The notes under the pieces were generated by a model. The model was not told the origin of the DNA and ran no database searches. It saw only the letters and a list, made by a program, of their open reading frames with translations. 64,000 nucleotides of DNA, taken from assembly GCA_964188305.1 (NCBI GenBank), contig OZ076894.1; one strand, written 5' to 3'. The position numbers were made by a program, and so were the translations under genes. Positions 3,605-60,990 of the stretch are shown in pieces (position 1 is the stretch's first letter; each line of letters begins with the position of its first letter). This DNA is from Podarcis bocagei. Its lineage: Eukaryota.

Positions 3605-4217
3605 TTTATTAAGAGATTTCTATACCACCCTTCAACAAAAAAGGTCAGAAGCAATTTACCCCAAAAAAGTAATATAAAACATATTAAATGAAAGCGTTAA
3701 AATAATTCTCAGAATTTATATAAATAGCATAATCAAAAACACCCCCAAAAATGACTTAACTGTCAACCACTAAAAGCTGGCAAAAATGGTGTGCTTTTTA
3801 CCCAATATCTGAAAGAATACAGAGTCGGGGCAAGATGCAAGTCAATGGGGGTGCCATTCCAGTGTCACAGATCCAACACCAAAAATGCTCTTCCGCAGGT
3901 CCCTGGACTATACACCTCCTTTAACACAGCAACCACCATGAAAGCCTCTCCCACTGATCAACCAACACAGGTAGGGTGGTACAGAAGAAAGCATTATCTC
4001 ATACATTTGGATCCAGGCCATTCAACATAAGCACCCTGAGCTGGGCCTAGAAGGTAACTGACAACTAGTGCAGATGTTTAGTAACAGGAGTTGTGGTCGA
4101 CTGGCCCACTGCCATTGACACCAACTGCATTCCACACTAGTTGCAACTTTTGGATTAATTTCAAGGGCAGACCCATTTAAAGTGCATTACAGTAGTCCAT
4201 CCTGGAGGTTACTAGAG
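3605..4217 (-). mobile_element. Old L2-clade LINE fragment
   Basis: Minus strand gives LVTSRMDYCNAL.MGLPLKLIQKLQLV and an L2-like 3' end; heavily decayed. Confidence 0.65.
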
Positions 4218-9800: not shown

Positions 9801-10072
9801 TGTATGAAAAATCCTGAGCCATTTTGGGCTCTGTATCACTCACTAAAATTGCCCTCAACTTGCAAAAAGGCCTCTCGTCTTCTTTTTAACCCTAATTCTA
9901 ATGTCACCAGCAAAATCAGATTTTGTTTGATCTTTTATTTTATTTTTAATGAAATGTTTGAAGAGGTACTAAAAAGTTAAAGTTTAATAGAAGGGATTTG
10001 TTGAAGTTATCTCATAATTTATTTATTTATTTATTTATTTAAAAAACCACTTCCTGGAAATGTGAATATTTG

Positions 10073-12119
10073 GGGGGGGACTTCCGGGTTGGTGCCTCCG
10101 GCAATGGCGGATTTCCTCTGACCGGGAGGAATCTGCTCCGCTCTGTGGAAATTTGGGTCTGGCCGCCACGGCGAAGGCGAAGACCCGTAAAAATCACAGG
10201 CGGGAGAAGCCTATGAACGTGGGATTCGGCGGGCACCTTTTGTGCCTCCCCTACTTGCGGGGAAACCCAGTTTTGGGGATCTGGAGCGACGTGGGGTGAG
10301 TGGCGTGGTGCTTCGAATCGTCTGCTTCTTCCACGGAGCGAAGCCGCATAGCTGTTGCCGGAGAGCATTGACTTTTTCCTGTGGACAATTTGACTCCAAA
10401 GTAATTACCCGTGAGTAGAGCTGAGACGGGAGAATCGGATTTTAAACATTTAATTTGGCATCGAAACGGGGAGGTTCAAAACAGGAAGTCCGCCTTCCCT
10501 ATTTGTAAACAGACTGAGGCAAGGAGGCTGTAGGCTGAAGTCTTGGAAAGCCTTTTGTAAAAGACTAAATTTCCATTGGTAAAGAGCATAAAACCCCCCT
10601 TGGAGGCAGGAGAAGAGGGGGGGGAGTTGTGGACTGAGTATGCCTGCAGGAGAGAGTGAAGGGAGTTAAAATAACGCCGCTCTGACCCTGGAAATGGGCT
10701 GCCAGTAGGACTGACATTTTGGAATGTCCATTGACAGCACTTAGAATGTTCCTTGACAGCTAGCAAAGTAAGAGAAATACATTGTCTCTATTGTCTCCGG
10801 CTGCTTCTAAAAAGGAGTAAAAAGTAACTGAAATCTGAAACTAACTTTGGATTGTATGAGTTGCGTTTAAAGGGGACATTGTCGACTATTATAAATAGAA
10901 ACTGTTTCCCCCTAGTGGAAGTTTCTGAAATTGGTTACTTTATAAGAGCTGGGCTAGGGGGACTTCCAGCTGCAAGATAAAAACTGTGAGACTCTGAGAT
11001 TCACCTTGAATCTCTCAAGTGTTATGGTAAATGGAAAGGAAAAAACCAGATGAAATGTCGACAGAAGAGGCCTTAGTGGTCGCATTAGTGAAAATAAACG
11101 ATTCGCTGGAACAGCTTCACAGGAAAACAGACAACCTGGGACAAAAGGTGAACACCAACACAGAAACCATCCAGAGATTGATACAGGAATTTACCTTGAC
11201 ACGGCAAACTGCGGATGAAGTCAGGGAGAAAACCCTTGCTGCTGAATGTAAAACAATACAACTGGAGTGTGAGAGAGCCCCATCCATTCAAAGGCAACTC
11301 GATGAACATAAGTTGACATCTGTTATGATAGAACTTAAAGAAAAGCAGATGAATTTGAGGACCAGAGTGGATGGGAGGGATTGTATCAGGAGGTGGCAGA
11401 GGGATGTTTCTGGATTTGTTTGGCAGGGCAGGAAGCCTCGAGTAAAATTTAAGATATTGACGGATGCTAAAGAAGGAGGTGGACCTGCCCTGCCAGACCC
11501 CTAAACTTTGTTGTGAACCATCTGCTTTTTGCTGGCTGAGAGAATGGTTGTCTCTTGGAAGCACTGAAGTGTTGGATAATGGCAGATGAAGTTGATGGAC
11601 TAGATGGAATTGGCGGAAAAGACTGGCAAGATCCGAGACCAGGGAGAAGAGTCGGTGGAAGAAGACTGGGAAAAGTTTAAAGATTATTTATAGAAATATT
11701 GTAAAAATTAATGAACGTTAGAAGAATGTTGGAATGAAGTTATATGGCTTCAGTAGAAATGTTATAAGGAATTAAGTATAAATAGATTAATAGAGTATTA
11801 AAGGAAAATAAGGTTAAAATGTGTTAAGATAATTATAGGATAGAAAATAGGGGAAGATGGAAAGGAATTGCTGAAATAATTAATAGAAGTGGAATACAAG
11901 AAGGGAGGTGTGAGGAGGCCATGGAAATATGTGAAAGAAAGATAAGATATTGGAAGTTTCCCCCCCCCCCTTCTCTTTTGATGTGTTTTTTAATTGTTTT
12001 TGTTTTGTTTTGTTAATTTTTATGTAGTGTTTTTGTATTGTAATGTACTGTTTTTTCTTTGTTTTTTCTGCAAGTGTTTAAATTGTTGTAAAAGGAATAA
12101 ATATTATTATTAAAAAAAA
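10073..12119 (+). mobile_element. Internally deleted, non-autonomous L1-clade retrotransposon with both ends intact
   Basis: 16-bp TSD GAAATGTGAATATTTG (10057-10072, 12120-12135); G-run and CpG-rich 5'UTR; ORF1-like coiled coil; ORF2-like pieces FVWQGRKPRVKFKILTDAKEGGGPALPD and WQMKLMD*MELAEKTGKIRDQ..EEDWEKFKDYL; AATAAA and A tail. Confidence 0.85.
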
Positions 12120-22123: not shown

Positions 22124-23133
22124 TACAGTAATGCAAACACCTGCAACCAGCTCACCTGAAGGGAAGCAGTAGCAGCTGAAACTCCTCACTGTGCTGCTCT
22201 CCAAGTCTAACATTCATTGTAGCTGCATACCTCGGAGCTTTCTCACATACTGAACAAAGATCATTTTCGGAGATAACCTCTAGAATCTATGCAAAAAGTA
22301 CAGCACAAAAAGCCTGGAGATTTCTTTAAAACGTCTCTGTTATTTTCTAACTCATTTTCCTGTCAGCCATGACCAAATATTCAACCCTATTTAAGTGGCA
22401 TATTTATGACACTTCATTCTTCACAAAAATTATCATCTCATAATTGTCATGTACAATTGTGTGTCAAGGGGTGATTTACTTTTAGATATACTCACATGTA
22501 TGGCTTGGACCCAAACCAGCTGGGGTTTTTTTCCACCATTGCTAATAAAACATAGAGGTGTGGTTGCCAGTTTGTTTCTTGGCCCAGTTAAAAATGCTCA
22601 GCCCATTGCTTAAAAGGCCTAATTGATAGGCCCCAAATATGATTAAGAGACCACCTTTCCCCCTACAGAACCTCTCAGGATCAGCAGAAGGAGTTCTCTT
22701 GGTAGCTTCACTGAACTCAGAAGTTCAGGGTGGTGATGGCCCAAGAGACTACTCCTCTCTTCTCACTTCAATCTAATCCTGCCTCTGGTTTATTAACAGA
22801 CATTATTAAGGCAAAGGTTCCCAAATTTAGACCTAACAAGGAACTCTGGCATAATTCAAGATCTCTGCAATGAAGCCCACAAGATGGAAGGAGGCAAAGG
22901 AGAAACACATGGCTTAATTAAAAAAAATCTATGGCGAGGTGAGGGCTGTTGTTTTGTTTGTTACCATGTTGTGTATTTTTGTGTTTTTATTTTTGCCCTG
23001 TGATCCTTGGATGAAGGGCTGTATAGGAATTTAATAAATAATAAAATAATAATGGCCACAGCACTCAGACATAACTTCATAAACTATTATTTATAGAGCC
23101 AAATGATAGTCTGAATGTGGCCTTTGAATAAGC

Positions 23134-23619
23134 CAGTGTTTCCCAACCTTTTTTGGGCAAAGGCACACTTGTTTGATGAAAAAAATCTCGAGGCACACCA
23201 CCATTACAGCCCCGTGACGTCAGCGCGCAGCGTCACGCCGGGAGGGACGCACGAAAGTGTAAGTTTCAATTTTTTTCCCTCCCCCTTGCCGGGGAACCTC
23301 CAAGCTTTGGGGATGGGGGGGGAGGAGGCAGCAAAGCGAGGCAGGAAGGAGAGCGCGGCTTGGCTGGGTGAGCTTTGGCAGGGGCAGGGAATGAGAGCCG
23401 CGAGGCGGGCGCTGCGGACGGAGGCGCTGCCCGCCGAGCTCGCAGGCAGCCAGGCAGGCAGACGGCGAGAGCCCCGCGCTGGGCGGCCTCTCCTCGCCGC
23501 CGCCGCCCCGCCTCTCGCCGCCCGACTCGCCCGCCTCCCTCCAGGCAACATCTCGCGGCACACCAGGCAACATCTCGCGGCACACTAGTGTGCTGCGGAA
23601 CAGTGGTTGGGAAACACTG
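23134..23619 (-). mobile_element. Non-autonomous hAT element, same family as 28972-30429, different GC-rich interior
   Basis: Same 15-bp TIR; perfect 8-bp TSD GAATAAGC (23126-23133, 23620-23627); shares about 70 bp at one end and about 110 bp at the other with the larger element; opposite orientation. Confidence 0.93.
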
Positions 23620-23995
23620 GAATAAGCAACCAACACTGTCCACGATAGTGATCTGGATTTTAAGATGGTCCTCTTCCAGTTTCCATAGCAACGTTCAGAA
23701 GCAGAACTTTCCACACCCAAAAGGTGTGTTCTTTTTAAAGGTGACACAAAATTTGATAGTTTCATCAGTAACACAGAGTTCCACACACAGCATCTCTGTA
23801 ATCATTATATGAGCCCTGTTAGATAGGCCAATATTATTAGCCAAGATATAGTGGTTTGCATAAAGCCATCCTTCTAGAGAGTTTGCAACAGCTGTGGAAC
23901 TTGAACCAAACATATTTTTTACATCTTGAAGTTTTTGTATGCATAACTTTCTGATAAATAAAACTGGTGCTTTTACACACTGTGGATGTAACTCA

Positions 23996-28030: not shown

Positions 28031-28971
28031 TTTATCATATTTGCATTTTTTAACTCCTTTAAAGGCTGTTCTTGGAATGCCATTTGACCATTGAAGGACA
28101 AGGCATAAACTTCAAAAGTAAACAAACGACTACCAAGTTTTATTTTCTGTTTGCAGGCATTGGGTGCAAGGCTACTTTGAATAGTGCCAAGTGAACTGTG
28201 CAGTAACAGCAAAGAGGAGAGCTGCAGCAAGGTGTTCATTGCAATATTTACTGCATCGTGACAGTTTCAATATAGACAGTTCTGAAAAGCTAGCACCGCT
28301 CAAAGAAGAAAGATGCAAGAAACAATTGAAATGTCAGGAAGGAAGTCCACATATTGGAAGAAGCAATGGACGTCTCCAAGCCATCTTCTACTGTTCCAAT
28401 GCCTGGATTTGACAACATCACCCAAGAATATTGCAGACACCATTATGTGCATTTTACAGTGAACTATTCATAGGTAGCTTACTGTATTTGCAAGTATTTA
28501 AAGCAAAGCAAGAAGAAAGGAATGCACAAGCAGGCACCATTGTTTCCCTCTTATTGTTGTGTTTTGCGGGAGATGGAGAGAAAGTGAAATTAACACAAGT
28601 GACACCCAAAGAGCTACAAAACTCCCGTTAGTTGTTAGGGCCACAAATGATACCAATATGCTAATAATAATAATACAAAGAGTAAGGATTAATAAGTACC
28701 TCCGTAAGAATGCTAAGTGTTGTAACTAATACACAGTTATAATGGAACGAAGGAACAATGCTACAAGTATCGAATTAGTTAGAATTAGAGAGCAATGACA
28801 AAGTGCAAGCTAGTGATGTGTTCAAGATTAGGGACACAATCCACAACTGAGCTATGCAGCAGGGGGTGGGGTTTGCATTGACAACCTCTACACTGCTCAG
28901 CTCTCACCAACTCCTGGCATATGCAGGGCTGAGATACCTGAAATTTGGGCAACCCAGGTGGTTGTCTAGGT

Positions 28972-30429
28972 CAGTGTTTCCCAACCGGTGTTCCGCGGCA
29001 CACTAGTGTGCCGTGGAACTTTGCCTTGTGTTCCGTGGAGGCGGGCGAGTCGGGCGGTGAGAGGCGGGGCGGCGGCGGCGAGCACACGCGGGGCGGCAAG
29101 CGAGCTCCCACATCCCATCGCCGCTCGCTACTGGGCCTGCGCATCCGCTCGCTACTGGGCCTGCCCCAGGAGGTGGGGTTGCGGGCATAACGCCCTTCCC
29201 CACGTGAGCGGGGAATCCCATCCGCCCCCACGTGAGCGGGGAATCCCATCTCAGCCCCCGCGAGAGCAGGGGAATCCCATCCGGCCACGCCTCCTGGCCA
29301 GCCAATCGGCTGGCTGGAGGGGACGTGGCTTGCCCTTTTTAGGGCCGGAGCGGAGGGGGCTCGCCCTCTCTTCTCCGGCTAGCCCCATCGCCGCTCGCTA
29401 CTGGGCCTGCGCATGCTCGGCGAGCACACGCGGGGCGGCGAGCGAGCGAGCTCCCACATCCGACGGCACCAAGCAGGGGCCGTTGGCCGTGCCGGTGCCC
29501 ACCGTGCCCGCCTCCGCCCAGGAGGGCGGCAAGCAGCCACCGCCGCCACCACCCCCGCCGCTGCCCAGCAACCGCGCCGCCGCCCCCGGCTCCCCGCGGC
29601 GGGTGATCGTGCAGGCTTCGACGGGCGAGCTGCTCCGCTGCCTGGGGGACTTCGTGTGCCGCCGCTGCTACCACATCCCATCGCCGCTCGCTACTGGGCC
29701 TGCGCGTGCGCGATCGCGCCTTCGGGATTCCCTTCAGCAGGCATCAAGCAGCCTGCCTCCCTGCTTTTTCCAATTAAGGGAACCTCCACTCTCCTGCCCC
29801 TCCGTGTTTCTCACCCCAAAGCCTTGTGGGCAGCAGGAAGTGGGGCCGTCCTGCCTCTACCCCACGCCGGGTGGCTGCTGACACGTCCCTTGGGCAGGAG
29901 AGGCATCCGGCTGGATGAAGGCAGCGACGCCGGGGGAACGAAACAGCACGGCAGGTCTGAGTTGGCGCCTGGAAGGACACAGACTGCTTCATGTCGCTGC
30001 ATTCCACAGCTCCGAGGCTGGCAGGTGAGTGCGTGCACTCCTCTCTCTCATTTTATTTAATGTGCATTTTAGAAGCATGTGGAAATATCCTGCGTCATCA
30101 ACCACTTTGGGGAAAGTGTGCGTGTGTGTGTTTGGGGCTAGATTTCATGCATGCCTTTTTTTTAAGTTCTCTTCCTGCTTCATCCACATTCACCCCCCAA
30201 AAGGCCATTTTCTGCGTGCTGAATAAATTCTGCAACTTACTATTTCATAATAAAGTAATTATAAAATACTTCCTTTGTGTTTATTTGATTCCTATTAAAG
30301 AGAGTTACTTTATATATAGTCAATATAGGCACAGAGTTAATTTTTTAAACATTTTCTAATGGTGGTGTGCCGCGAGATTTTTTTCATGAAACAAGTGTGC
30401 CTTTGCCCAAAAAAGGTTGGGAAACACTG
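28972..30429 (+). mobile_element. Non-autonomous hAT element with captured cargo (Pack-hAT)
   Basis: TIR CAGTGTTTCCCAACC / GGTTGGGAAACACTG; perfect 8-bp TSD GTCTAGGT (28964-28971, 30430-30437); no transposase; GC-rich mosaic interior. Confidence 0.93.
29462..29671 (+). pseudogene. CDK5R2: Captured internal fragment of CDK5 activator p39
   Basis: [80 protein letters not shown] and [28 protein letters not shown] match p39 as recalled rather than p35. No native start or stop; lies inside the hAT element. Confidence 0.9.
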
Positions 30430-31521
30430 GTCTAGGTTGCCTCGAAGGCCCCTAGTGTTATCTCTAATTAGGGCAGAGTTATTAGACATAATTACCAAAA
30501 GCAAACAGATAACATACCTTTTATTCAGCATACTTCTCAAGAAGCTATCTACTACTATATTAGTGCATATATATATTTAAAAAAAAGAATGCAGAAAGCA
30601 GAGACTGAATGATGCTCATATTCTAGAGGAGGCAAGCGCTGTCTAACATGTCCTCAGTCTACAGTTATGTGTCAATGAGAAGATGAGTTGTTACAAGAAA
30701 TCACAGGCTTTTAAAAGCAAAAAAACAAAACAGAATTAACTGAAAGGTTAATTACAGAAGAAAGGTAAAACCCTGTAATTAAGCTCATACAAAAAAAAAC
30801 CTTTAAGATGAAGTAGGAAGTAAGGTTTTCCCCCCAAGGCTTTTGCCAACACATGTCTTACACCATTAACTAGAATTTGACAAAAGGCAAAACAAGCTTA
30901 ACAGCAACCAAATGACCATTTATCCTAAAAGGGCAGAATTAAAAGTAATGCATCATTTGCTATAATTATTTGAAGTTAAACAGCTCCAGAAAATAACAAA
31001 GATGCACTGTGATGGGGTATGCACACTGGGACATACCTTGCTGCTTTAAACAACTGAACCATTGGCCATTCAAGACCAGCACTGTATTGGAGATACGTAA
31101 CCAACACATGTGCTCTAACCAGGATCTACAGTCCCTCCTCCACCACAGGTGGTGAAGGAACAGCACTATAAATGCAGAGAAAACATGGGTGGCTAACCTG
31201 CAGCACAAATATCACACATGGATCATGGAGGTTTGAGACATACTTTCATAGAAGCACATGGACCCATAGGCCTGGATAGAGCATGACAGCAATGACTATG
31301 GCATAGCGGCTCTTTCCTGCCTCCTCCTGAACAATGTGCTTTTGCCTGCTCTCGAATGCAGCAGATTAGTGGCAAACCTACTCCAAGGTACTAGTAGTTT
31401 ATTGTGGCATTATCATATACTCTGGACTTGACTTGTGGCACACTTCACCCAAAAAACTGACCACCACTGAAATGAGCAAGTTTAACATGTGCATTTATCT
31501 GCCAATATGGCTAACTATCGC

Positions 31522-37410: not shown

Positions 37411-39696
37411 ACAAGAGAAAATTCCGGGGTAGATGACATAGTATAAGACAGAGGGGTGTGTGTAGAAAGCCATGGTGTGAACAAGCTCCATTTTGTACAA
37501 ATGCTTGGGAATCCACAGGCACAGATGCCAGGATAGCAGGGGCAACCAGAAAACTGATATTTGTAAAGAGCCAGGAAAGCATATGCAGGTGTAGCAATGT
37601 TTGTTCTTTTTAAAAACAATAGCACAGGAAGGTGGGGCATTTGATATAAATACAACACTGCATCTAATCTTGAAATGCAGTATCAATGAAATGGGTGGAA
37701 GGCTACAACCAAGACCCACACTTCTCATTGTTCCTCCTCTATAAAGCCCCCAGCTAGGTACACACTTTACTTACTGTGGAGCAGAAAATGAGGAAGGTGA
37801 GCTCTGCTTGTTTCTAGTAAGGCAGTTAAATACAAATGTGACAAGCAAATAAATAGCATCCACTATCTCTTTTAAATATCAAGATAGAATCTTGTGGTAA
37901 ACTTTTAAAAGGTGTAACATTTGACATTCATCTCACTGTGAAGCTTGCAGAAAAGTAAGTATAAAAACTTTTCAAAAGAAAAGAGTGAAATGCAGGACAA
38001 TCTGGGTTCACCCCAATATAGTTTGCTGCCCAAGGCACAAAAACAATATGATGCATTCAAGGTGGTGAAAGAAACCCAAAGACAACAAACTAAACAACTG
38101 ACAACTGACTGCCCTTTAGGGTAACCCTTCCAATAAATCCAAATTAAAATTAGAAGAGCTGGGGGAATATCTAAAATATTACTTGAACTGTTGACCCCCA
38201 CATCTCAAAAGGAAAGACTGTGACCAGCCCACCATAACTAATTTAACGTAATGCTCTCGGTGATTATGGAAATACAAAATACAACATGCTGTTAACAATA
38301 CAGGCATAAGGAACTTGGATCAATGTTGTAAGCAGTTAAAAACAGAATCCAGAAAGTTATTCCCATGTCAATTACTGTATAATTTAGTGCCACAAACCAG
38401 AATTTTAGCCTTTTGCTCCACTCACAGTTCAATCCTATTCAAGTCTACATTGAAATAAGTTTCAGTGAATTCAATGGGACTCTGCACCTTTAAATCATGT
38501 TGATTAGAATCTGCAGCTTATTTCAGTTCATCCACAGAAACAAAAGCAGGAATGTTTATGTGAACAAGACACCACAACACAAATTAAATAGTATTGCTTC
38601 TTTCTGCCAGTGCTGTGAAGAGGTACCATTTTCTGGCATGATCTACAAAAACATGATTCACAGAGCTCACACAAATGCACCTGCCATTGTAAACATGAAT
38701 TACTGCAGGGAGTGACCATTACTGTCCCATAAATAAAATTCCCAAATGTCTAAGATACACGACACAGACTCTGAGGCAAGTCCACACTAAAACAACAACA
38801 AATAAGTCTTGAGAAACATCTCAGGTACAGGAGACTTTTGGACAGACACTACAAAATCCTGGAGGAAATCCAACAAAAGCAAAAACTTTTCCAAGGTCGG
38901 CCTACTATAAGAAGCCATTACATTTCATCTTCAAATTCCTAGTATTTCCTCATATACATATCTACCTATGTCTGATGTACCAAAGGATAAACGAATACTG
39001 TATAAGGCAGTGTAAAAATCAAACCTGGAAACTTCAGCGGATCAGCTACTGAGCCACAGCTGAGTGGTAAAGCATCTGATTTTCATGCACAAGGCCCCAG
39101 ATTCAGATTCAGACACAAGTTGATGAGCTTTCCTTGGCAAAGTTGTTGAGCTTTTTTTTTAGTTGTTGAACTTTTGGCCAATGAAGTTTTGGAGCTATTT
39201 TTAAGGGAATTTGCTTCAAAACAGTTAGTTGGGCACGGTTCCTAAGCTAAGTTAAACAACCGATGGGAGAGTTTGCGATTATGTTAGGCATGTGCACTTA
39301 GCTTATTTTGAGCACCATATGTGATGGGGAGGTTAAAAAATTGGAGAAAGGAGAGACAGTGACCAATTGAGCTGGGGTAGGAGGGTGGAGATATTTTTCT
39401 CACTTTTCCTACAACACTCACTAGTTAATCTACATGAACTGCCTATCAAAAAGACAGAAAAAACAAGAGACAGTACTGACAGGTAAAATGCTAAGGAAAT
39501 GGAACTTTTCTTAGCAGTTTACCTGTCAAACCTGTATTCAATTCCTGACACACCAGAGGGGGTGAAAAGGAGGCAATATCCCCCCCCCCAGATAATAGGC
39601 CGCTTCTGGATGGGCGCAATGAAAACCCCCACCACTTTTCAGGAATCAATCACCGCTTTTCTTCTTCAAATCACACAATGGTTGCGTCGTGTATCA

Positions 39697-39949
39697 CCGT
39701 ATTTTTCGCTCTATAAGACGCACCAGACCACAAGACTGTTTTTGGAGGAGGAAAACAAGAAAAAAAATATTCTGAATCTCAGAAGCCAGAACAGCAAGAG
39801 GAATCGCTGCGCAGTGAAAGCAGCAATCCCTCTTGCTGTTCTGGCTTCTGGTATAGCTGCGCAGCCTGCATTCGCTCCATAAGATGCACACACATTTCCC
39901 CTTACTTTTTAGGAGGGAAAAAGTGAGTCTTATAGAGCAAAAAATACAG
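39697..39949 (+). mobile_element. pogo/Tigger-like MITE family C (short form)
   Basis: TIR CCGTATTTTTCGCTCTATAA; TA at the right end; internal hairpin. Confidence 0.8.
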
Positions 39950-40199
39950 TATACTATACTTACACACACCCTCCCCTTGTCTATCAGGAGGAAAACGCAT
40001 TTGACAAGAATTCAGTTGGGCAGAAATCATTAGGAGGTCGCTGAAGGGGTAAAGGACTGAGTGGGAAGCAGGAAAGTGCGCGCTTTCCCAGGAAGATGCC
40101 CAGGTGGCCTTCCTCCCCTTGGGGCAGAGGGAACAAAAAACGTAACCTGGGCTCCCTCAGAACCTTTCCAAGTTGCCAGGCGGAGCTTGGGGGGGGGGG

Positions 40200-41420
40200 G
40201 TGTTGACATCCGTCGGCCCTGTGCAGGCGCACCCCGCGCCTCCCCGCTCCCGTCCACTGGGGGACGCCGCTGCTTCCCTCGTCCTGCCTCGGCTTGCCCC
40301 GCGCGCTCGGCCCCGCGCCCCGGGCGCGCGCTTACCCAGGCACTTGATTCGGAAGCCCGCGGGGGGCTTGAGGGACCTGCGCATCCAGCCCTCGCGCAGC
40401 GCCTCCAGGTGCTCCTCCTTGCCCTGGATCAGCAGCACCTGCTCGTCGATCCAGCCCAGGAAGAAAGTCTCGGCCACCGCCGCCGTCACCTTCTTGTTCC
40501 AGAAATGCTGCATGTTCTCCTGCTTGAAGTCGGCGAAGATCTCGTAGCCGATGTGGTGGCGACCCAGAGAGTCGCTGCCCGGCGGCGGAGGTGCTCCTTC
40601 CCCTTGCTGCTGCTGCTGCAGCCGCCGCCGCCGCCGCTTGCCCTCGCCTTCCCCGTCGTCGTCGTCCTCCGCCTCTCCGCCGCCGTCCTCCTGCAGCTCC
40701 TCTCGGTGCCTGGCCGGCCGCGAGGCAGCCTCTTCCCCGCCGCAGGGGCTCAGGACGATGGCCAAGGAGTGCGGGGCGATTTGCAAGAACTTCTCCATCC
40801 GGCGAGGCATCGCGGCGTCGGAGCGCCGAAGAAGCAGTAGTCGAAGCAGCCGCTGCCTGGCCAGGAGCGCCGGGCACGGCACTGCGCGCGGCGCTGGCAG
40901 CCTGGCGCGGTTCCCAGCTTCGCCAGGACGGACCGCCCCCGCCGGCCCAGCGGCAGGTTCCGCGTCTCCCCGCCTTCTCCCCGCTCGCTGCACGTGGACG
41001 CCTGGCCCGCCTCCCGGGCGACCCTCAGCGGCGCCGCCCTCTCCCTGCGCCGCGGGCTCCCTCGCAGACCGGCTCCTTTGCCGCGTTTGCTTCAGGTTAT
41101 AAAGCCGCTCTTTTCAAAGCAAAAGAAAAGTTTTAAGGGCGGCACACAGCATCATACAACACTCGAGGAAATTATTAAACTACTTTCGCCCGCCTCCAGT
41201 TCAGGGTTGCCACCCACAGGGCCCCGCTGTGTATTTTAGCTACTGGAAGGTTGGGAAAGGGAACTTAATTCACCGCCTGGAACTTGAGGACTGTTCAGTC
41301 CTGTCAGGCAGCTCTTGAAAAGCGCGCGCGCGGGCGCTGTGAGGAATTGGCAGCCCTGATCCACTGCTAGAGAGCGAGAGAGTGGAAGCGTTCTCTCCCT
41401 CCTCCCGGTCGCACCCCAGT
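40200..41420. promoter_or_regulatory. STOX2: CpG island / STOX2 distal promoter and 5'UTR
   Basis: Very GC- and CpG-rich block in AT-rich surroundings, spanning the first exon and its upstream region; GC boxes and a (CG)n run near 41322. Confidence 0.8.
40336..40810 (-). CDS. STOX2: Storkhead-box protein 2, first coding exon of the long (distal-promoter) isoform
   Basis: Translates MPRRMEKFLQIAPHSLAIVL...HHIGYEIFADFKQENMQHFWNKKVTAAVAETFFLGWIDEQVLLIQGKEEHLEALREGWMRRSLKPPAGFRIKCL-G, matching the storkhead N-terminal block as recalled for STOX2. ATG at 40810 (second ATG 40798); phase-1 donor G|GTAAG at 40336/40335. Lies next to TRAPPC11 as in other vertebrates. Confidence 0.93.
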
Positions 41421-60860: not shown

Positions 60861-60990
60861 NNNNNNNNNNNNNNNNNNNNNNNNNNNNNNNNNNNNNNNN
60901 NNNNNNNNNNNNNNNNNNNNNNNNNNNNNNNNNNNNNNNNNNNNNNNNNNNNNNNNNNNNNNNNNNNNNNNNNNNNNNNNNNNNNNNNNN
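60861..60990. other. Assembly gap (130 N)
   Basis: Run of N. Confidence 1.

Follow-up and report, generated by a model that had tools for sequence, protein, structure and literature searches.

Gene fragments carried inside transposons raise the question of how host sequence enters a mobile element and whether the element then carries it further. This question is posed by a 64-kb stretch of Podarcis bocagei DNA (contig OZ076894.1 of assembly GCA_964188305.1, hereafter the window), in which a 1,458-bp DNA transposon at 28972–30429, the focal copy, lies in an intron of STOX2 and contains a coding fragment of CDK5R2 (p39). The original prediction regarded this element as a Pack-hAT, that is, a member of a hAT family that had captured a host gene piece and may be spreading it. 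To address the origin of the element, we compared it with individually retrieved loci, the full-length copies coming from P. muralis records: two P. muralis element loci (L001 and L003), the P. muralis CDK5R2 locus (L002), a Zootoca vivipara locus (L011), and a Logan contig (L004). Collectively, the comparisons indicate, with a probability that we put at about 85%, that the focal copy is a non-autonomous internal-deletion derivative of an autonomous lacertid Buster-type hAT element that holds a 213-bp copy of CDK5R2 in its 5' leader.

Based on sequence observations, the focal copy is sharply bounded. Its 15-bp 5' terminal inverted repeat (TIR), CAGTGTTTCCCAACC, at 28972–28986 on the plus strand, is the exact reverse complement of the perfect 15-bp 3' TIR at 30415–30429 on the minus strand. 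The element is flanked by a perfect 8-bp target site duplication (TSD), GTCTAGGT, which is identical at 28964–28971 and 30430–30437 and has TA at positions 4–5. Within the window, the CAGTGTTTCCCAACC 15-mer has four exact occurrences, which form two inward-facing pairs; a search that tolerated as many as three mismatches gave eight matches against 2.0 expected, and none of 100 shuffles attained eight. Additionally, the list of open reading frames (ORFs) of the element contains no transposase-like ORF, tblastn with the family transposase gave no match anywhere in the window, and no Rfam family was found in 28500–30900. The perfect TIRs, the TSD, the length, and the lack of a transposase thus all agree with the original description, and an element with inverted ends and a TSD but no transposase inside is a Pack-TIR (here a Pack-hAT). 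Moreover, the interior (29040–30010) has 70% G+C and a CpG observed/expected ratio of 0.83 versus 0.19–0.22 in the flanking intron, so that the earlier remark on intact CpGs also holds.

The cargo at 29462–29671 (plus strand; BLAST boundaries 29460–29672) translates into the 70 open codons that had been quoted when it was first assigned to CDK5R2, and protein and DNA comparisons both confirm this assignment. The peptide matches the Pfam family CDK5_activator (PF03261) with 35.8 bits at a cut-off of 25, over profile positions 178–205 of 336, and its alignment with CDK5R1 falls at the beginning of the p25 fragment that has been crystallised. Its best named protein matches are all CDK5R2 (P. muralis with 93%, then Tiliqua, Salvator, snakes, and geckos), and CDK5R1-named proteins appear among the weaker matches only. 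At the DNA level, the 213 bp of 29460–29672 align to bases 275–499 of the 951-bp P. muralis CDK5R2 coding sequence, a single exon that translates without interruption (L002 3001–3951). The cargo begins at codon 92 of the 316-codon parent and ends in ...RRCY, which corresponds to residue 18–20 of the crystallised p25 core chains 1h4l and 3o0g. Neither the N-terminal region nor the complete CDK5-binding globular domain is present, nearly the whole fold being missing, and the cargo is a gene fragment, not a gene. CDK5R1 (p35) was rejected as the source because all top named matches are CDK5R2 and the proline-rich part matches squamate CDK5R2 only. As had been proposed, the source gene lies elsewhere: the parent CDK5R2 is on OZ076954.1, the P. 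muralis element copies are on OZ076960.1, and no family ends were found within 3 kb of the parental gene. The cargo region is conserved in CDK5R2 across vertebrates; therefore, the direction of transfer was from the gene to the element.

The two borders of the cargo preserve the site of its entry. The cargo splits a repeat unit of the leader, in the order ...CTCCCACATCC, cargo, CACATCCCATCGCC..., and the same unit is whole at 29076–29148 (plus strand), where an internal "empty site" reads from ...CTCCCACATCC directly into CATCGCC.... A 7-bp duplication, CACATCC, borders the cargo on the left (29455–29461, plus strand) and on the right (29672–29678, plus strand), and the first C of the right copy is also found in the parent gene. 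Between parent and element, the microhomology is CC at the left junction and C (1 nt) at the right junction, with approximately 20 nt of imperfect parent similarity upstream of the left junction. This anatomy appears to fit microhomology-guided template switching in break repair or replication, and the same route has been proposed for animal Pack-TIRs (PMC8277862).

Two complete counterparts of the focal copy that still encode a transposase are present in P. muralis. The top protein match of the cargo is not CDK5R2 itself but an "uncharacterized protein" of P. muralis (P0001), which continues on both sides of the cargo into the same non-CDK5R2 peptide that the focal copy encodes; P0121 and P0122, also P. 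muralis models, belong to the same cluster. The first element copy (L001 10135–14339; 4,205 bp; TSD GTGTAAGC) lies inside an intron of a POU-domain gene, and the second (L003 12439–16643; 4,205 bp; TSD ATGTAGAG) lies 59 kb from it on the same chromosome record. Both contain the same CDK5R2 insert with the same two junctions as the focal copy, and their left end differs from the focal end motif at 1 of 15 bases. The two copies are identical at 4,205 of 4,205 positions, and their flanks are unrelated. A segmental duplication was rejected as the source of the pair because the homology ends at the element ends and the TSDs differ. From two 100% identical 4,205-bp copies with different TSDs and unrelated flanks, we infer mobility: the P. 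muralis element seems to have transposed very recently and is apparently still active. In total, the cargo-bearing insertion sites number three and have three distinct 8-bp TSDs, and further cargo copies with the same TIRs and different TSDs, as the original prediction expected, thus exist in P. muralis. Furthermore, P0122 is a third, slightly different cargo-bearing P. muralis protein model and implies a further copy, although no record was found for it when a third P. muralis locus was sought. Similarly, UniProt A0A670J3W2 has the same chimeric junctions, matches none of the compared copies, and points to a further locus.

The structural difference between the focal copy and the P. muralis copies primarily lies in one segment. 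In a global alignment, the focal copy and the L001 copy are colinear, with 1,357 matches, 40 mismatches (97.1% substitution identity), and a few small indels in internal repeats. A single large gap remains, as the focal copy lacks L001 11365–14144 (2,780 bp), and the two sides of the gap overlap by ACT, located at 30235–30237 (plus strand) in the focal copy. Since the 2,780-bp segment has neither inverted ends nor a TSD at its edges in L001, the difference reflects a loss from the focal copy rather than a gain by L001; the same grounds led us to reject a nested insertion as the source of the additional 2.78 kb. The deletion took out the transposase gene that is seen in the P. muralis copies. 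Beyond it, the 3' subterminal region of the focal copy (30235–30429, plus strand) is the 3' end of the autonomous element past the transposase stop codon, with 97.4% identity to L001 14145–14339 and 94.9% identity to the Zootoca element at L011. At the opposite end, the 5' subterminal region (28972–29084, plus strand) is typical of the family: approximately 110 bp are common to a second member in the window (23134–23619), and the first 64–68 bp also occur in a 2-kb member at L001 and in the Zootoca element. By these comparisons, the focal copy appears to be an Ac/Ds-like internal-deletion derivative of the autonomous element. The presence of the cargo in autonomous copies, together with a simple deletion, favours capture in, or inheritance from, an autonomous form. 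The Pack-hAT designation is therefore appropriate as a label for the focal copy but not as an account of where the capture took place, since the cargo is in the autonomous 4.2-kb element.

The transposase gene of the P. muralis copies lies within the extra 2,780 bp. An intact ORF of 626/627 amino acids is present in both L001 and L003 (L001 12230–14107). Related proteins bear the names "zinc finger BED domain-containing protein 5-like" (ZBED5-like) or "SCAN domain-containing protein 3-like", and their precomputed domains are DUF4371, FAM200-ZBED5_RNase-like, and FAM200-GTF2IRD2-like, with the hAT dimerisation domain in some; a relative that is 98% identical to the transposase has precomputed PF14291, PF27073, and PF27046. 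Among solved structures, no sequence match to the transposase was found. Additionally, perfect 8-bp TSDs are present at all six bounded elements (GTCTAGGT, GAATAAGC, GTGTAAGC, ATGTAGAG, GTCTATTC, and ATCTAGTC), and all six have TA at positions 4–5; given a TA frequency of 0.066 in the window, the chance of this is approximately 8e-8. The 15-bp perfect ends of both copies in the window fit the short TIR range of hAT elements, 10–25 bp (PMC3942097). TcBuster has 8-bp TSDs with the consensus nnnTAnnn, which sets Buster apart from Ac (PMC3499496), and ZBED5 is Buster1, in the Buster branch of hAT (PMC3606216). Collectively, these features class the family as a putative Buster-type hAT. The superfamily originally proposed from the TSD is consequently upheld by the TSDs, the ends, and the transposase, and is refined to the Buster type.

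The transposase is also 79–87% identical to proteins of Xenopus laevis, pipefishes, Danio, Bombina, and poison frogs, as well as to those of a tunicate (Styela clava) and a spider (Stegodyphus dumicola). So patchy a distribution at high identity suggests that horizontal transfer may have occurred, a process that has been reported for Buster elements, according to the citation of Guan et al. 2022 in PMC12637253.

To place the capture in time, we compared the cargo with CDK5R2 genes of several lizards. The focal cargo differs from P. muralis CDK5R2 at 4 of 211 positions, whereas CDK5R2 of P. raffonei, P. lilfordi, Zootoca, Lacerta agilis, and Tiliqua shows 5, 8, 9, 10, and 24 differences, respectively; the cargo of the P. 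muralis element copies differs from that species' own CDK5R2 at 3 of 205 positions. Length differences of the cargo sit in a GCC repeat that also varies among the CDK5R2 genes of different species. A 12-nt "deletion" relative to P. muralis CDK5R2 was rejected as a marker of a single capture because the GCC-repeat length varies in lacertids and Zootoca has the short state. Likewise, the 93% BLAST identity was rejected as a measure of age because the deficit is mostly gap columns, with only 4 substitutions in 211. The Zootoca vivipara element (L011 4189–7715; TSD ATCTAGTC) has a frameshifted transposase and an unrelated 1.45-kb leader, without the cargo. Because the cargo is closest to P. muralis CDK5R2 and the related Zootoca element lacks it, the capture is placed within the Podarcis lineage. 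With 1.5–2% substitutions from the parent in addition to repeat indels, the capture is older than the insertions examined. The description of a recent event thus applies to the insertions, above all to the two identical P. muralis copies, but not to the capture.

Taken together, these data fit the following history. A 4.2-kb element with 15-bp ends, nnnTAnnn TSDs, and a 626-amino-acid ZBED5-like transposase would have been active in the Podarcis lineage, as two identical copies at different sites attest. Bases 275–499 of CDK5R2 were copied from another chromosome into a repeat unit of its G+C-rich leader; the direction and the boundaries of this step are visible in the sequence, while its mechanism was presumably template switching in double-strand-break repair or replication, with short homology as a guide. 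The chimeric element would then have continued to transpose, leaving at least three insertion sites with distinct TSDs. Finally, the observed 2,780-bp deletion with 3-nt microhomology removed the transposase gene and gave rise to the 1,458-bp form in STOX2 intron 1. The deletion may have preceded the insertion, with the short form mobilised in trans, or it may have arisen in place by interrupted gap repair.

Several observations weigh against this history or loosen parts of it. Only one 1,458-bp deleted copy was seen, and the tally of copies comes from retrieved loci, so that the genome-wide number may differ; the focal copy and the P. muralis copies may also sit in separate genomes. A Pfam scan of the transposase places zf-BED, DUF4371, and Dimer_Tnp_hAT in the expected order, yet none of the three matches reaches the threshold; for this reason, the assignment of the ORF to hAT is based on named relatives, precomputed domains, and the ends and TSDs. 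Template switching is a mechanism that we infer from junction anatomy alone. In particular, a 29-nt remnant of a 5' end lies at L001 11858, between the cargo and the transposase, and given this inner end, the 4.2-kb element may have a composite origin instead of being one simple element whose leader is long. This last point leads to a reversed order of events, in which a non-autonomous, focal-like element captured CDK5R2 first, as a true Pack-hAT, and an autonomous copy later joined it to form a composite that moves with its outermost ends. The inner remnant, whose TTTTT variant is the Zootoca end motif, is in line with such an order, as are the transposase-gene versions of Zootoca and the Logan contig, which have unrelated leaders without the cargo. 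However, the extra 2,780 bp are not bounded by inverted ends or a TSD, and the 3-nt overlap at their edges is that expected for a deletion in the focal copy; moreover, only one 3' end is present in the composite, and its entire length is homologous to the Zootoca 3' end. We therefore consider the reversed order unlikely. As a separate observation, remnants of family 5' ends inside the 4.2-kb element lie at L001 11858–11886 and 11715–11760, with the TTTTT variant as in the Zootoca ends, and may be scars of earlier repair or signs of a composite.

The remaining alternatives concern the cargo itself. If CDK5R2 sequence had been copied from mRNA or cDNA, by RNA-templated repair or as reverse-transcribed filler, the break-repair step would be the same. 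Only coding sequence was taken, and CDK5R2 is a single-exon gene in P. muralis, so that the absence of an intron is uninformative; but the cargo has no poly(A), no transcript 3' end, and no L1-type target duplication, and both of its boundaries are inside the coding sequence, which makes an RNA template improbable. Tan et al. 2021 (PMC8277862) attribute most animal Pack-TIRs to gap filling that left a single copy, and the junction microhomology would fit equally well with a filler insertion of CDK5R2, independent of transposition, into a resident single-copy element at the focal locus. Since copies elsewhere, each with its own TSD, share the cargo and both of its junctions, this explanation has only a very small chance. 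An assembly chimera of CDK5R2 reads and a repeat is practically negligible: beyond the generic risk posed by G+C-rich repeats, nothing specific was found in its favour, and the same junctions recur in the independent assembly GCA_964188315.1 at two loci and in UniProt A0A670J3W2. It is also conceivable that the cargo belongs to a new chimeric protein-coding gene under selection, represented by the NCBI models LOC144328279 and LOC114591266. Two predicted P. muralis proteins, of 248 and 261 amino acids, read the cargo in frame and combine a host-derived first exon with an element-internal exon. However, a 5-bp indel places the focal copy and the P. muralis copies in different frames past the cargo, and because of this shift, the C-terminal 118 residues of the predicted protein are not conserved; searches with the non-CDK5R2, downstream part returned no relatives outside its own cluster. 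Additionally, the cargo stretch has 78% G+C, and ORFs of at least 100 amino acids in other frames cross it on both strands. Because such G+C-rich DNA is open in several frames, the 70 open codons are not evidence of constraint or function. As the fragment spans only Pfam positions 178–205 of 336, with the N-terminus and nearly all of the CDK5-binding fold missing, a selected chimeric gene is very unlikely. Most likely, the CDK5R2 piece is passenger filler DNA with no protein function.

The leader may nevertheless matter for transcription. In the NCBI gene models, which are predictions, the exon of P0001 and P0121 maps to L001 10458–11150 and L003 12762–13454 (693 nt), and a locus-specific host exon is joined to this element-internal exon and then to an acceptor that precedes the transposase ATG by 178 nt. 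By alignment to L001, the counterpart of this predicted exon in the focal copy is 29343–30024 (plus strand), flanked by an acceptor AG at 29341–29342 and a donor GT at 30025. These models suggest that the leader has usable splice sites and that its donor could pair with the acceptor just ahead of the transposase gene. Upstream of the exon, three 28-bp tandem repeats with CACGTG, followed by a CCAAT motif, lie within the block of CpG-island density (29198–29283, plus strand). Each copy delivers approximately 1 kb of CpG-island-density DNA with splice sites, which is antisense to STOX2 at the focal locus. More speculatively, the leader, including the cargo, could act as the promoter and first exon of an active transposon; as a mobile CpG island that evades methylation, it would drive transcripts of the transposase or of host–element chimeras and would seed sense and antisense CDK5R2-homologous RNA according to site. 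We regard this as doubtful; if true, antisense CDK5R2-homologous RNA would arise in STOX2 intron 1, and small or duplex RNA could influence CDK5R2 or the recipient host genes.

Other members of the family were found in the window and in the retrieved loci. The second member in the window (23134–23619, minus strand; 486 bp) is non-autonomous and has perfect ends and the TSD GAATAAGC at 23126–23133 and 23620–23627. It lies in the same STOX2 intron in the opposite orientation to the focal copy. Its interior is G+C-rich (CpG observed/expected 0.85) and has a GTAAGT-like donor, but it differs from that of the focal copy and lacks the CDK5R2 piece. Over the 157 bp at its 3' end, it is 98% identical to the 2-kb member at L001 14983–16973, which has the TSD GTCTATTC and a repetitive G+C-rich interior. 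With respect to further coding cargo, no Pfam match was found in the ORFs of the 486-bp member, the 2-kb L001 member, or the rest of the focal leader. Additionally, a 136-bp palindromic miniature element at L001 18045–18180 has only its terminal 17 bp in common with the family and no matching 8-bp duplication. Among the autonomous versions, those of P. muralis (L001, from ~12213), the Logan contig (L004, from ~494), and Zootoca (L011, from 5641) are 96–99% alike from a point approximately 12–17 nt ahead of the transposase start codon through to the 3' end, whereas the leaders upstream are unrelated. The L004 leader and the focal copy have only a 45-nt motif containing GCGCATGCGC in common, at window 29697–29736. 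The leader thus appears to be a hypervariable, exchangeable module.

The host gene of the focal insertion was examined within the window. The first coding exon of STOX2 (exon 1; 40322–40810, minus strand) is the sole STOX2 exon there; its ORF is 77–79% identical to the N-termini of rattlesnake STOX2 (P0252), a corn-snake "uncharacterized" protein (P0253), and gar STOX2 (P0277), and approximately 50% identical to STOX1. No further STOX2 exon, such as exon 2, was detected in the window by motif search or by tblastn with the gar and rattlesnake proteins. Exon 1 is on the minus strand; therefore, STOX2 is transcribed from the minus strand, and the focal copy lies approximately 10 kb inside intron 1. 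Both the cargo and the element, read in its own sense direction, run antisense to STOX2, in agreement with the intronic, antisense position originally described. STOX2 pre-mRNA would thus contain the complement of the cargo. The longest exact runs between the cargo and P. muralis CDK5R2 are 96 and 65 nt, and pairing of STOX2 pre-mRNA with CDK5R2 mRNA would be geometrically correct.

STOX2 exon 1 lies within a CpG island (window 40000–41100; 69% G+C, CpG observed/expected 0.89). The coding exon ends in ...KCLG and is followed by GCAAGC instead of GT, so that the intron may be of the GC-AG type or the exon may end at a slightly different place. Just outside the island, nested inverted repeats occupy 39696–39950 (28-nt arms, 199 nt apart), with an inner repeat at 39780–39850 (31-nt arms, 9 nt apart, 94% complementarity), and may be another miniature inverted-repeat element. 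Elsewhere in the window, positions 10001–12000 have a positive GC skew of 0.20–0.34, with long ORFs on both strands at 11031–11564 whose sole Pfam match is weak and sub-threshold, and 60861–60990 is a run of 130 N bases.

The spread of host coding sequence by a mobile element is rare in vertebrates, and the locus and its relatives provide such a case. The same 213-bp fragment, with the same junctions, is found in an intact autonomous element, in its deletion derivative, and in at least one further variant; one lineage therefore unites the capture, the transposition that followed it, and the origin of a "Pack" form. Moreover, the identical copies and the intact 626-amino-acid transposase point to a DNA transposon that is active now, or was so very recently, in a wall lizard. 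Recently active DNA transposons are uncommon among amniotes. Insertions that drop approximately 1 kb of CpG-island-density DNA with predicted usable splice sites into host genes also offer a natural system for studying effects on host transcription.

Plants offer many documented examples of cut-and-paste transposons that captured gene fragments. Like the Pack-MULEs of rice and other plants, the lizard elements are bounded by TIRs, carry and amplify a host gene fragment, and show the same preference for a G+C-rich piece. In contrast, the lizard element is a hAT with an 8-bp TSD rather than a Mutator element with 9–11 bp, and a single recognised fragment in a handful of known copies stands against Pack-MULEs that are often multi-gene chimeras and number in the thousands. 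The relation between the focal and the autonomous copies resembles that of Ac and Ds in maize, in which the ends are the same and one internal deletion at a short overlap removes the transposase gene; mobilisation in trans is presumed here. However, the lizard element belongs to the Buster branch (nnnTAnnn), not to the Ac branch.

Within that branch, the family shares 8-bp TSDs with a central TA and ZBED5-like or SCAND3-like relatives with TcBuster, AeBuster, and the domesticated ZBED5/Buster1 and SCAND3 (PMC3499496, PMC3606216, PMC12637253). Similarly, its near-identical relatives are patchily spread across animal classes, as in horizontally transferred Buster elements. Unlike these, the lizard element has a host coding fragment, and its placement here is by names, domains, and TSDs. 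Our literature search returned no report of a host coding fragment in a Buster element and no paper connecting CDK5R2 with a transposon.

Among animals, a survey of 100 genomes identified 370 Pack-TIRs, of which four were multicopy (three in Xenopus tropicalis and one in an alligator) and none of these was from a squamate; gene-fragment capture was mostly single-copy and independent of transposition, and the multicopy Pack-TIRs favoured G+C-rich cargo (PMC8277862). The lizard element is similar to Pack-hAT-N8_XT of Xenopus tropicalis (Tan et al. 2021, PMC8277862), a hAT with a few hundred base pairs of a host gene from another chromosome. In both, copies at different loci have distinct 8-bp TSDs and microhomology at the junctions; both also took up G+C-rich sequence and have predicted chimeric transcripts. 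In contrast, the lizard cargo is coding sequence, whereas that of Xenopus is 5' untranslated region; the lizard cargo is in an autonomous element with an intact transposase, its non-autonomous copy being a deletion derivative; and the host is a squamate, while the multicopy cases in the main text of that survey (PMC8277862) are only from frogs and an alligator. Collectively, this case joins the animal Pack-TIRs and is set apart from them by its coding cargo, its intact autonomous Buster-type carrier, and its apparent very recent transposition in a lizard.

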